NCBI RefSeq assembly: GCF_001194135.2
Contig: NC_068989.1
Location: 2,714,244-2,778,243, forward strand
DNA: 64,000 nt
Source: Octopus bimaculoides
Lineage: Eukaryota
Reading direction: 5' to 3'
In this document: positions 24,601 through 39,600 of the stretch, in pieces
How positions within the stretch are numbered: the stretch's first letter is position 1
Layout of the letters: every line of letters begins with the position of its first letter
The notes under the pieces: generated by a model
What the model was told of the DNA's origin: nothing
Seen by the model: only the letters and a program-made list of their open reading frames with translations
Database searches by the model: none
Translations under genes and position numbers: made by a program

Positions 24601-27600
24601 CATTGCCAAGTTAATAGTGTTTCATATTGAGAAACAATGACTGAAATTTAAGGGAGGGAATTAGTCAATATGATGAAGCCCAGTATTTAACTGGTACCTT
24701 ATTTTGCCAAACCCCAAAATGTTGAACTCAGAAGAAGAGTTCAAGCTAGAACGATGCACCAATGATTCTGACAAAAACTGGGGTGCAGGTGCCATGTAAA
24801 AAGCACCCAGTACACACTGTAAAGTGGTTGGCATTAGGAAGGGCATCCAACTGTAGAAAACCCAAGCCAAAACAGACAATGGAACCTGATGCAACTCCTG
24901 TCAAACCATCGAACCCATGTCAGCATGGGAAACGGACATTAAATGATGATGATGATGATAAGAATGGGCAGTAAGAATGAAATAGGAGATAAAAACAGGA
25001 TATATATGAGGCAGATATTTGTGTATATGTGGAGTGATATTTTTTACCCATGTCTTTTAAAGTATGATTTCTATAATGGTGAATGCGTAAATATAATGAT
25101 ATTCAGAGCAAATGGAGGAAGAAAGAATTAATTTAAAAAGATAATTTAATCAAAGGTTATTCCGATTTGGACATAAGTGTTTCCTAACACAAATATCTTG
25201 GTGGTTGGTATTCGAGTACCCGAATGATGTGTAAAGAACATGATTAGCAATGCTCAGACTTTCTACCCTTCTCTGATAATGGCCAGCAGTTTTATCATCC
25301 CACCCTTTTATCCAAACTATCAAACAATACAACAACAAAAGAAATATTTATGTGCCACATGTAAAGCACCCAGTCCACTCTGTAAAATGGTTGGCATTAG
25401 AAAGGGCATCCAGCCATAGAAACCATGCCACAACAGACAAATGGAGCCTGATGCAGCTCGCTGGCTGACCTTGAGCTCTGGTCAAACCATCCAACCCAAC
25501 CCCACCTGGGAAATAAGAATCTATGATGATGTTGATGATGATATTTGTGACACCGTCTGCAGGTCTAAAACCAACTTTTGCATAAAGGATTACTTCTCTT
25601 CCATTCTTATAACTTTCAATATTTCAACATACAGCACCAAAATGGCAAACAAACAGTTACATAAAACACCAACACACACACACACACATTCAAAACTGGC
25701 CAAAGTGGAATGTACAAAAGAGACCTGGAGTCTGCAAGCCAAATCATAGGCTGGATAAAAACTGATACAAGAAAGAGAGAATTCTTTGCATGAATGAGAC
25801 AATTTCTTAAGCATTAGTAGCATGGGAACTGGTGCTAGGAAGGGCATCCAGCTGTAGACCACATGTTAATAATATGGTCTCAATAACCAGTGAGGAGAGC
25901 ATCAACTCCAACCCAAATAACAATCGATGCAGAGTAGGAGGGGGGGAGGAGCGGTTTATTCCTGCTCGTATGGAGCTGGGGATACAGAAAACTGCACCCA
26001 GTCCACAAATGTAAGACAAACACACACAGCATTGGTTTTCTCTGTTGCTGTGTGACCAACATGGCACCAACAGTGACAAGCTGTCCTACCCATACCAATA
26101 TGGAAAAGAACAGAGCAAACCGACAATGACATCACCCCTAAAGAATAAGATAAACATGAAATTTCACCTTCAGACATGTGTGTGTAGAGCCCACAGGTAA
26201 AATACTTTTCCCCTGCTTGTATATATACAAATACACATATAAATATCAACATGACACAGAGGAGACATACACTGGAGATAAAAGGAGAGAAAAAAAAAAA
26301 ACAGTCGCCTGACTGAGAAGCGTACCATTCACATTGGAGTGAGACTGTCGGGATTGGACACTTTCTGGAAAAATACCGGTAGATATAAAAGACGAAGGCA
26401 TTCAGTAAGTTGAATGGAAAGAAAAAACGAAAGCTGAAGAAGCTGCAGCAACGCAAGTAAATCCAAACAAACAATTCATATCAAATAACTCCAAATAATG
26501 AAAACAGTTGTTTTAAGCGTAGAAGAACAATTTAAATATGGTGTAGTTAACAAATAACTGCTCGCTTATAAACTGATAATATAACTAGACAAGGTTTCTA
26601 GTTTTTGTGTTGTATGTTGTTGTTGTTGATTTTTTTTTTTTTTTTTTTTTTCAGAACTGATATAATTTTGCAGTTGGTAGTAGAGCTGAGTTTGTTTAAC
26701 ACTGGTAAATAACAAGCTAAAGAGTGAAAACTCTAGGTAGAAGTTTCAATTTCACTAAAAGTGGAATAGAGAAAAGATGGAGATAAGGAAGAGGGGAAGG
26801 AGAGAGTTTAGTGATTTAAGAAAAATAACATTCTAGGGTATTTTTTTAAAAATATAACATTTTATTTTCTCTGCTTTTTTTTAAATATCTTTTTAAAAAA
26901 TTTATTCCAGTTGCCATTTAAAAAAAACATGAAGAAAGTCTTCATAGACTTAAAAGTTCAAAAGTTTTTTTTTTTTAAACAAACATTCTATTTTACAGGC
27001 GAGGGGACATAACTACAGCTATACTGCCAAGTGCAGAGGATAGGCAGACCTCACCTTAGAACAAACCTTTCACTAATGCTCCCCTTAAAAATAAAAAGGG
27101 GACAACGATAATCCAGAGGAGTAACACATGTACTTGTAACAGCTTGTACCATTTAATATTGTAGCAAATATTTCAGTACAACTCAGACAAGTTCTTGATT
27201 GGAACACATTTGAAATAGTATCAGGAATAACAGACAAATATACACAGAGCAAGATCAACAGTAACATTTTCAGATACAGGTTATAAATAGAACCGAGTTG
27301 AATGTTCCACGACTCCTTTGTGTTATCTTAGTCATTTATTTCTTTTTAGAGTTAATAAGTAAAATTCTTACGTTACTAGGCGGGTAGGGAGTTTCCTGAT
27401 TTCTGTCTACAGGCTATCAACTATGGAAAGTTTATTTTTATCACACACCTACAGACAATTATTATCTTATCGTGCTAATCACCTAATCATCTCACTAACA
27501 TATTGATGTTGTTATTATACAAGGAAACAAAAAAGTGCCTTTCTCATCACATTGACCAAGTGTCAAATTCAGACCAGTGACCAAATTTCAGAGACAGGTC

Positions 27601-36600: not shown

Positions 36601-39600
36601 TACCTCAACAAAATTCCATCTGATCCATTCAAGCATGGAAAAGTGGACGTTTTACGATGATGAAGGTGGTGATGTGCGTGTGTGTGAGGGAGAGTCTGTG
36701 TTTGTATGTGTGCGAATATTACTGTATTATTAATACCATATTATTGCATATTACTTATACGTATACAAACACACATTCATTTATATATATATATACATAT
36801 CAAAGAGTATTTGCAAATTCTTGCCAAAGAATTAGAGTTTGTGACTCATGACCCAGTTTCAAATCTTAACTGGAACAATTAAGCTTCACTTACTCTAAAA
36901 ACCCAAGGAATCCGACCATTTTCCGAAAAAAGGGAGATTGACACAGGCTAAATGAAATTTACCATCTCATTTTCCCTGGCAGACTACAGGATAAAAACTA
37001 TTACAGAAGTTCCAAAAAACTGAGAGTCAGAGGGCTTTGTTTCTTTTTGAACACAAATAACGGCACAGACGGATACAAGATGGAAAAAGAACCACAAAAG
37101 ATCACAAAAAACAATGCGAAAGAAGGACCAGACAACATTACAACATTCTATTATTTTATGGTTTATTTTAAACCTCCAAGTATTTTTTTTATTAGTTCAC
37201 TCGACCGAGTGCATTTATTTTAAATTTTATGTTATTTCGTTTTAGTAAAATCTTAAGACAGCAGTTATCAGAAACATCCCAGCCACAGTGACAAAGGACA
37301 AAAGTATAAACAAAATAAAAAACAAAATAGAAACACCATATACAAGTGTGTGTGTGTGTGTGTGTGTTTACATATATACATGTATATATGTATACATATA
37401 TATAAATGTATGTGTATATATATATGTATATATGGGAAACCAATGCAGCACATGAAAGCAAGCATAACAGAAGAGGAAAGACAACTTACTTGAAGTCTTG
37501 TGAGATGTAGAGGAGGAGGAAGAAGAGGAAGAAGAGGAGGAGGAAGAGGAGCAAGTACTACTAGAGGCTAAGAGAAGAGGGGGAGAAGAGACAAAGAGAG
37601 AATGGTCAAGAGGTGTGGGAAGGAAAAAGAGATGGAGAGAGAGAGAGAGAGAGAGAGCGAGAGAATAAAGAGAAGGGAACGTAGAAAAAGAGAAAAATAG
37701 GTAGGTTAAAGTAAATAAATCACAATTTGTATGTTAGATATGATACTGGCATATTACAGTATAGTGCTTAGCAGTTATAGTGAGTAGTAGTAGTAGTAGT
37801 TAGTAGGCGTGGTAGTTTAAAGTTCGGGCAGGTGTCTCCATGTGACCTAAAGAAAATTAATTTCTCCACTGATTTTATTTCATTTCTTTTAACTAAGCAC
37901 AACACAAGTTTACATTCTCAGGTAAACTTGTCCAGAGTTGATCCAATCAATTCTACCCCTTAACCCTTTATCATTTAAACCGGCCATATCCGGACCAGAT
38001 ATTCTACTTGTTTTATGTTCAAACCGGCCAGATCCGGCCTCTCACACCTAGCTTGCAATATCATTCTAAGAGTAAAGAACTGCAGCATCAAAAATCTCAA
38101 AGCTACGAGATGGTGCACGGTTAATTCGAAACAAGGTGAATAAATAAGCATTGTATTAGACAGAACAATAATCTGAAAGCTGAAGGGCCCAGCAACCCCA
38201 ACCAGAAGAATGAATGACAAAATCAACCCCCAACAACAAGATTTGAACTCAGAACCTTAGAAATCACCTTCACTGCTCTGATAATTTCCCAGTGATGAAA
38301 TTTTAGACCAACAAATTCTTGTTCTTACTTCAAACAATGCTTGAAGGAATTGTGGCAATAATATTGACCACCTTGAAGGATTTAAGAAGAGGAATAAAGA
38401 TGATTTTTATTTATTTATAAAATAACAGAATGAGATTGGTTTACATTCGTGCATTTTCTCTGAAAACACTAGAGCTGTATTTGAACTGACATTAGCTGGA
38501 TTTAGATCTCCATGCATACCTGATATTTATTTGTATTGACTCTGAAGGGATCTAAATTTAGACCATAGAGCAAAGAGACTCACAGGTTTACCATCTCCCC
38601 ACATTGCATGGAGAACAGTCAAGAGTGATGCAAGATCTGACCCATTCAAACATGGAAAAGTGGGTGTTAAAATGATGGTGATGAATTTAATGTAGCACTG
38701 GCACAAATCTATTGTTCTCAAAAACAACTGAACTGAATTAACATATCCAGAGAGGACGGACACAACTAGAGTGCCTAACTTATCTCTGATAACCTCAATT
38801 TGCACTAAAACATTCTAATATAGACATACTACAAGCTGTGTCCAGAACATTCACCGTAAAAACTTTTGTCAAGGAAAAATTTGCTCTATGAAAATTTGGT
38901 GTCAGAAATTTCACTACATAGGAACATTTACTGTAAGACAAATTCACCATATGGACAATAATGAGTTATATTATATTGAGTATTTTTTTAAATAAAAAGA
39001 ATCATAAAAACTTCAATGAAAGTCTTTAGGCAATGTCAAGCATTAAAATCGTTCTGAGGTTATTTAAAACATAAAAACTCCAAGCAATGCAGTGCAAATA
39101 GTGTACTTTTTGCTACAACTTATTTCTTTTTACAGCAGATTTTCTGAGAGTGAAATTTCTTACAGTAAAACTTCCTATAACCATTACAAGCATGTTATTG
39201 CGAGGATGAGGTGTTGTATTTCACTAAGTTTTGCTATATACAACAACTATGTAGAGTGAGCCAACAGGAGTTGTCTTGGGCAGATTTAGAGTCTCCTCCC
39301 AAGCTGCAAAAAACAATCTCCCAGCCAGTGTGTGCCAACACCCTAATAATTCAATCGCTTGGAAAGGACATCTAACATAGGTAACAGGCCAGAAACTATA
39401 GGGAAAGAATTTAGTTGATTATATTCAACACCAGTTCTTGACTGGCACATATTTTTTTCATAGATCTCAGAAGTTGGATCTCTGTGAGATCTGAATCCAA
39501 AATGCATTGTATTCAGCACTGTTGATTCTGCCATTCGTCTTTCACCTTAATAATAATAATAATAATAATTTAGGAAGATTGACGTAATTCTTCATAAAGG

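Follow-up and report, generated by a model that had tools for sequence, protein, structure and literature searches.

The SMARCD1/BAF60 gene of Octopus bimaculoides contains, within a single large intron, what is most probably a tandem row of short symmetrical cassette exons that tune the N-terminal tail of its protein. The row was analysed in a window of 64,000 nucleotides (nt) of genomic DNA (RefSeq assembly GCF_001194135.2, contig NC_068989.1, positions 2,714,244 to 2,778,243 of the forward strand), where the gene occupies the minus strand. Four of the cassettes (a, b, c and d) are certain and a fifth (A) is probable, and the row appears to be of old molluscan origin; we put the probability of this reading at about 0.85. 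The BAF60 subunits probably connect SWI/SNF remodellers with transcription factors, in part via their variable N-terminal region. Vertebrates vary this region by means of three paralogs; in molluscs one gene would do so through short exons that leave the frame intact, arranged in an old row at one fixed site.

A preliminary description of the window, made from its letters alone, had proposed that the intron hides a battery of serine-rich, frame-preserving exons (segments of 78, 33 and 39 nt and a weaker one of 45 nt), from which one gene might build a combinatorial set of isoforms. In kind the feature is an ordinary one, namely alternative cassette exons in a low-complexity, presumably disordered region of a well-known gene. 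Nor is most of it hidden: four of the five cassettes, including the 33- and 39-nt exons, are already present in public annotation (RefSeq isoforms). No paper describing them was found in the literature searched, where nothing named SMARCD1 together with octopus. New here are the probable fifth exon A, the two cassettes that the preliminary description had overlooked (a and c), and evidence for an origin of the intron, and of Ser/Lys microexons in it, before gastropods and cephalopods split.

Four cassettes in the annotated isoforms

Searches by tblastn with a SMARCD1 sequence and a cephalopod transcript traced a complete coding region over roughly 59391 to 9606 of the minus strand. Splicing the exons of the window gave a protein that contains the SWIB/MDM2 domain PF02201 (E=2e-25, 88.8 bits; Pfam cut-off 25) and is 97% identical to annotated Octopus SMARCD1 over 100% of the query, the difference being one optional microexon. 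By sequence, therefore, the gene is SMARCD1/BAF60, as had been proposed. All exons in the window are identical at the protein level to those of O. bimaculoides, O. sinensis and O. vulgaris. The large intron, previously described as a phase-1 intron of about 29 kb, indeed has phase 1, measures 28,969 nt (50841..21873, minus strand), and is flanked by the two exons assigned to it. It opens at the donor ...CAT GGT TAT CCA G/gtaagt (the slash marks the splice site). The constitutive exon upstream of it is found in every annotated isoform, and the direct join to the downstream exon (HGYP-G-MPRTG) is present in eight of the Octopus proteins that we fetched as well as in Logan transcripts.

A search with the full-length protein returned ten clusters of Octopus SMARCD1 isoforms, to which the cluster listings added many more. 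From O. bimaculoides (XP_014770215-233 and XP_0528263xx), O. sinensis (XP_036362406-439) and O. vulgaris (CAI9728118-128) we fetched 28 Octopus proteins, which cover the sets of the three species only in part. Only the full-length query retrieved the Octopus isoforms; word-indexed searches with N-terminal queries missed Octopus proteins holding identical stretches, and their outcome is no evidence of absence.

The extra peptides of the annotated Octopus isoforms match exactly four segments of the intron, each bounded by AG and GT and with a length divisible by three. The peptides of b and d occur exactly in annotated isoforms of all three Octopus species, cassette a in isoforms P0129, P0243, P0249-P0251, P0255, P0256 and P0278, and cassette c in P0126-P0129, P0245, P0252, P0255, P0257, P0259, P0260 and P0278. 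The RefSeq and GenBank isoform sets contain precisely the a, b, c and d of the window, with the same junction residues; neither exon A nor the 45-nt segment is in any of the 28 proteins fetched from them. Splicing the window exons in silico reproduced the annotated junction regions exactly, and the junction-codon rules given below rebuilt the full-length proteins P0255 and P0278. Inclusion and skipping forms both exist, among annotated products or transcripts, for each of a, b, c and d. These four cassettes are certainly real.

Outside evidence of this type is what decides. We scanned the intron for AG...GT segments of 21-150 nt with a length divisible by three, an open frame when entered in phase 1, and minimal splice-site scores (the matrices are rough, approximate vertebrate frequencies, and serve for ranking within the window only). 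The scan yielded 49 segments on the sense strand versus 22 on the antisense strand, and 7 versus 6 at a summed score of at least 12; splice-like open-frame segments are by themselves no more than chance. Among the 49 sense segments exon A ranks 1, b 3, d 5, c 9, a 32 and the 45-nt segment 35. The boundaries, lengths divisible by three and open phase-1 frames previously given for the 78-, 33-, 39- and 45-nt segments are all correct. The pyrimidine tract ascribed to each of them is missing from the 45-nt segment. As to their being exons, the 33- and 39-nt segments are confirmed by annotated isoforms, the 78-nt segment is probable, and the 45-nt segment has found no support.

All cassettes have phase 1-1 and canonical AG...GT boundaries (a, A, b, c and d alike), which makes at least three consecutive same-phase cassettes in one intron: four certain and one probable between 50842 and 21872. 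Each cassette begins with the second base of one split codon and closes with the first base of another, so that every subset is frame-neutral; in all 32 combinations of the five the frame stays open between the flanking exons. What varies with the neighbours is the junction residue alone. The upstream exon or a leads to Ala; A, b or c lead to Thr, Lys or Ser; a or d give Gly when joined to the downstream exon; and Glu arises where the upstream exon or a is joined directly to c or d. The inserts enter a Pro/Gly/Met-rich N-terminal region, 38 residues before the conserved motif block and core, and measure 11-63 residues (up to 89 with A).

The 28 Octopus proteins show nine patterns: skip (8), a (1), b (1), ab (1), bd (3), abd (3), bcd (8), abc (1) and abcd (2). 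These are 9 of the 16 possible combinations of a-d, counted as gene models and not as reads. The combinatorial, frame-preserving set that had been predicted is thus borne out at the level of annotation, with two more annotated cassettes than the prediction contained. Neither c nor d occurs without b in any of these proteins, indicating that b is the core cassette. This dependence of c and d on b, together with the weak splice sites of a, c and d, suggests regulated rather than constitutive use.

The expected serine-rich character holds for only part of the row. Cassettes b and d (and candidate A) are rich in Ser or Ser/Thr, and b and d each contain an R-x-S. Cassette c encodes a 23-residue mixed-charge segment rich in Lys, Arg and Glu, basic overall and 88% purine in its DNA, and cassette a is mixed hydrophobic and basic, ending in RKRGK. 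The cassette region resembles the Ser/Arg/Lys-rich SR-25 family weakly, below the cut-off, in a match that reflects composition only. Cassettes b and d share an 11-nt block at the same offset, which is only a hint that one might be a duplicate of the other: 28 of 2000 shuffles reach the score, and it is not significant after correction for ten comparisons. A scan for regulatory motifs (RBFOX, NOVA, MBNL and UGC) found nothing outstanding, and in the 60 nt before each cassette TGC occurs 0-1 times, no more often than in the intron at large.

Conservation in decapodiforms and candidate exon A

Cassettes a, b and d are, on sequence comparison, common to octopus and decapodiform cephalopods. The decapodiform transcripts that we found in Logan cluster at 90% or more with Sepia pharaonis SMARCD. 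In a cuttlefish-like transcript containing b and d (L002), b is identical to the window at 29 of 33 nt (88%) and d at 31 of 39 (79%), as compared with 86% for the constitutive upstream exon and 69% for the downstream one. The constraint on the cassettes is thus at least that on their neighbours. The counterpart of b in L002 reads NSKNRESGSS, and a counterpart of a is present in a decapodiform Logan transcript (P0285).

Exon A, the 78-nt segment, carries the top acceptor and donor pair of the whole intron, and we consider it likely that it is a real cassette exon missing from the Octopus proteins examined. Alternatively, A is no exon. Its sequence would then be either a (TCY)n microsatellite that lies by chance between an AG and a GT, or a conserved intronic tract, rich in CU, that regulates the splicing of the neighbouring cassettes (by binding PTB, for example). 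We regard this as unlikely, while several observations fit it and count against A as a fifth cassette. The body of A is a (TCY)n microsatellite amid (TC)15 and (AT/GT)n repeats, with Tandem Repeats Finder reporting a 3-nt/12-nt repeat over 37509-37555. Purines make up 19% of A (81% is pyrimidine), which is unusual for an exon, versus 49-88% in the four annotated cassettes. The 300 nt upstream of A hold 19 PTB-type motifs against about 3 expected, a pile-up that the repeats of exon A lead one to expect. An open frame means little here, because no stop codon can occur in a run of pyrimidines. None of the 28 Octopus proteins contains exon A, and six hypothetical isoforms with A, which cover few of the possible combinations, gave no match in exact look-ups. 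Its inclusion is seen only in two untidy gene models of Sepia.

The absence of A from the annotation is weak evidence, since low-complexity exons are easily lost in short-read mapping. If A is real, a low-complexity exon has apparently been missed in the three octopus annotations sampled, and standard pipelines can lose coding exons that look like repeats.

The two Sepia (Acanthosepion) pharaonis models (CAE1174960.1 and CAE1174957.1) speak for A. They read HGYP-A-NSNT-S11-TSSKTS, the octopus sequence with A included being HGYP-A-SSSTC-S14-TSHKTS; the upstream exon, the Ala junction to it, the Ser frame and the non-repetitive tail TS-x-KTS are common to both. The best tblastn match of the Sepia poly-Ser segment in the whole window is at 37550-37428. 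On this sequence evidence exon A, too, is probably common to octopus and decapodiforms. It counts against this that the Sepia models continue past the position of the octopus donor into Phe/Leu/Ser-rich, junk-like text. The residue at the read-through is Arg and not Ser, and the donor of A may therefore not be conserved; a donor at this position is kept in Sepia only if the Arg codon is CGT. Without its poly-Ser part the run-on text scores only 20 bits at the site of A (E 0.28, rank 5), so that there is no detectable similarity beyond the octopus donor. We accordingly rejected a conserved flanking intron downstream of A, which was not significant once the poly-Ser had been removed. The same low score bears against the reading of A as no exon, as does the fact that the Sepia counterpart keeps the frame, the junction and a tail outside the repeat.

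The wider set of Sepia pharaonis models (CAE1174954-961) resembles octopus in having b, d and the poly-Ser segment on the same upstream exon. It differs in the run-on past the donor of A, in showing no cassette c, and in an 18-nt phase 1-1 microexon, KQRRT, at the same insertion site (P0281 and P0282, that is CAE1174954.1 and CAE1174958.1), for which the octopus window has no counterpart. The presence of so short an exon suggests that the Sepia models are likely transcript-based.

It also speaks for A that on the gene strand of the 64 kb there are only two (TCY)n tracts, exon A and a tract in the same intron at 47414-47378 (minus strand). Ten serines could be read from the latter in one frame, but usable splice sites are missing, and no protein examined has a counterpart of it.

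Limpets and the age of the row

It had been suggested that this single gene may diversify by splicing instead of gene duplication. The row is not, at any rate, a cephalopod answer to having one gene: limpets have cassettes, and other molluscs have inserts, at the same site. RefSeq isoforms of Patella vulgata (XP_050418020-031) contain four cassettes there, rich in Ser and Lys and used in eight combinations, with the peptides SPSSVSATSLSVKTTS, ASKMKDPS, SSKSKDSS and SSKNKENSS. In the genome of P. caerulea (JAZGQO010000021.1) the corresponding exons are 51, 27, 27 and 30 nt long, all of phase 1-1, and lie upstream of an exon starting tag/GT ATG GCA CGA. This exon has the same start as in octopus, and the position and phase of the intron are therefore common to both. 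Among the matches listed, Ser/Thr/Lys-rich inserts at this site are common in SMARCD1 proteins of other molluscs and absent from those of vertebrates and insects.

Limpet SMARCD1 thus resembles that of octopus in having the same phase-1 intron before the GT ATG exon, with four short phase 1-1 cassettes variously combined. The three short limpet exons resemble octopus b, sharing the motif S-K-x-K/R-E/D-S and the ending TCA A/gtaagt; limpet microexons of the form SSK(S/N)K(D/E) stand at the insertion site of cassette b. The 51-nt limpet exon is TCT-rich, starts cttag/CT TCT and ends AAA ACA ACA TCT A/gtaagt; octopus A starts cttag/CC TCT and ends AAG ACT TCA A/gtaagt. RefSeq annotates this limpet cassette as alternatively spliced, and its agreement with A in position, phase, start and end argues that A, too, is an exon and not a repeat between chance splice sites. 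Limpets differ from octopus in that no counterparts of a or c were seen and in that the Ser exon is not a pure microsatellite. The orthology of single limpet and octopus exons is judged from position, phase and end motifs, the alignments being short and of low complexity; that of A with the limpet exon is low-complexity at the nucleotide level and not statistically testable, which tells against A.

The shared site, phase and exon ends indicate that the intron, with its Ser/Lys microexons, is older than the divergence of gastropods and cephalopods. Exon A would then probably have grown from a TCT-rich ancestral exon via microsatellite slippage. A more far-reaching version can be offered only tentatively. 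In it, A is real and descends from an alternatively spliced TCT-rich Ser exon of the gastropod-cephalopod ancestor, enlarged by slippage in coleoids. Together with a-d it would form a five-exon Ser/Thr/Lys module more than 500 million years old (our own estimate), through which a single-copy BAF60 gene might equip its product with as many as 32 N-terminal tails that differ in charge and in phosphorylatable sites, and perhaps do so differently from tissue to tissue.

Two side observations concern the limpet gene. Since its first residues fall within the second cassette (MKDPSG...), the deposited P. caerulea model KAK6166015.1 has none of the N-terminal region, and the 51-nt Ser-rich cassette is found 6 kb before the point where the model begins. 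Tandem duplication clearly gave rise to the exon pair at 10246 (27 nt) and 12857 (30 nt).

Use of the cassettes and further features of the window

The inserts would tune a low-complexity, presumably disordered tail by changing the number of its phosphorylatable Ser and Thr residues, its net charge and its content of basic stretches resembling nuclear localization signals. An altered tail may in turn change partner binding or the sub-nuclear partitioning of BAF complexes.

Another reading accepts that the cassettes are spliced and takes the combinatorial set to be mostly annotation inflation or splicing noise, with one or two forms dominating (for example, skip and b+c+d) and the cassettes having no separate function. 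Two points count against our own reading: a functional role of the inserts is something we infer, and the Octopus isoforms are computational models (some marked 'PREDICTED') that may over-enumerate combinations. Gnomon-type pipelines enumerate the combinations of supported introns; that just nine combinations are annotated, always with b where c or d is present, also fits the reading of inflation or noise. Nevertheless, we consider that reading quite improbable. Between octopus and decapodiforms, conservation of the a, b and d peptides equals or exceeds that of the neighbouring constitutive exons, and all cassettes, in octopus and limpet, have kept their phase and a length divisible by three. 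Moreover, the skip, a-only and b+d forms are each present in independently assembled Logan transcripts (P0124, P0285 and P0131, respectively). The reading we prefer remains a row of cassettes that tune the tail.

Vertebrate BAF60 comprises three paralogs, SMARCD1/2/3, and the N-terminal variants BAF60c1 and c2. As in octopus, variation is concentrated in the N-terminal region before the conserved core and the SWIB domain; unlike in octopus, it comes from paralogs and alternative first exons, with no internal row of symmetrical cassettes. The v-exons of CD44, and the conserved short exons in disordered regions known from the microexon literature, provide examples of consecutive same-phase cassettes of lengths divisible by three that encode Ser/Thr-rich or charged low-complexity inserts. 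Arrays of the CD44 type are like that of octopus BAF60 in that consecutive cassettes share a phase and every subset keeps the frame, and differ in that BAF60 is a nuclear and not a cell-surface protein. At 33, 39, 48, 69 and 78 nt, the octopus cassettes all exceed the strict microexon limit of 27 nt or less, and only a, b and d fall within the loose limit of 51 nt or less (the SRRM4/nSR100-type criterion). The row also offers a simple system for studying what the BAF60 N-terminal tail does, as defined inserts are added or removed with the core untouched.

The 45-nt segment was rejected: despite its AG and GT boundaries, its length divisible by three and its open phase-1 frame, it is most improbable as a fifth or sixth cassette, given its acceptor without a pyrimidine tract, its low rank, and an aromatic, Cys-containing peptide that is unlike any cassette and absent from every Octopus, Sepia and Logan protein examined.

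Table 1. Coordinates of the exons, candidates and gap discussed in the text (positions in the window unless stated otherwise; slashes in the junctions mark splice sites; scores are acceptor/donor)
Feature	Coordinates	Strand	Description	Junctions	Scores
Upstream constitutive exon	50842..50950	-	GPRAPYPG...GVPPHGYP plus G of split codon; translation, tblastn to SMARCD1		
Cassette a	46245..46292	-	48 nt, phase 1-1, peptide after (A); exact match to annotated peptide	tag/CT ... G/gtatag	
Exon A (candidate, probable)	37490..37567	-	78 nt, phase 1-1, peptide (A)SSSTCS(14)TSHKTS	tag/CC ... A/gtaagt	13.6/9.2
Cassette b	33487..33519	-	33 nt, phase 1-1, peptide after (A)	tag/CC ... A/gtaagt	6.4/9.2
Assembly gap	29317..29326	.	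10 N, in intron between cassettes b and c		
Cassette c	27870..27938	-	69 nt, phase 1-1, peptide after (K)	cag/AA ... A/gtgagt	
Cassette d	26326..26364	-	39 nt, phase 1-1, peptide after (K)	cag/AA ... G/gtacgc	6.7/6.7
45-nt candidate (rejected)	26212-26168	-	no pyrimidine tract	cag/GG ... G/gtgaaa	0.5/7.2
Downstream constitutive exon	21761..21872	-	...MPRTG...QQISKP; translation, tblastn	cag/GT ATG CCT	
P. caerulea cassettes	L004 3993-4043, 9990-10016, 10246-10272, 12857-12886				

The assembly gap between b and c has a poly-A run on one side and CCCCC on the other; the sequence around it is plain intron, and in the direction of the gene b lies 4.2 kb before the gap and c 1.4 kb after it. The nearest exon is more than 1.3 kb away, and, as no exon touches the gap, the reading frame is unaffected by it. 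The order b-c-d across the gap matches annotated proteins from chromosome-scale contigs (96.9 and 105.9 Mb), in which the b-c junction GTS-K-RELKK is present. All cassette peptides of the annotated proteins were located in the window, so the gap conceals nothing annotated. Two more gaps likewise touch no exon: one, at 40912-40970, is found between cassettes a and A of this intron, and the other (21607-21684) lies 77 nt downstream of the donor of the MPRTG exon.

Some further variation was noted elsewhere in the gene. The first coding exon, the upstream alternative exon PQFIQASYR and an alternative MVSGQRAEPKRKKELK start lie outside the window. Two annotated alternative cassettes, both of phase 0-0, are located upstream of the large intron on the minus strand, at 59317-59391 (75 nt) and 52812-52832 (21 nt, LAVLQIE). 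An optional Lys directly before GPRAP separates pairs of annotated isoforms (for example, P0127 versus P0128, and P0248 versus P0241). If this Lys is the AAG at 50953-50951 (minus strand), the preceding dinucleotide is TG and not AG; the site, 3 nt ahead of the usual acceptor, would then be a tandem 3' splice site of non-canonical type. Downstream of the large intron, a 42-nt phase 2-2 microexon (13472-13513, minus strand) sits between the IVINHIIV and MDGPDAKK exons; all fetched Octopus isoforms include it, and some decapodiform transcripts or models skip it (P0124, P0246 and P0283). Finally, in positions 1-245 of the Logan transcript L001 (SRR9970002) the end of exon 1 (MRPFSQPGYP) runs into gtaagt, and roughly 200 nt that look non-coding separate this from the PQF exon, an arrangement that suggests a retained intron or an alternative 5' exon; the same contig has a frameshift near position 640.

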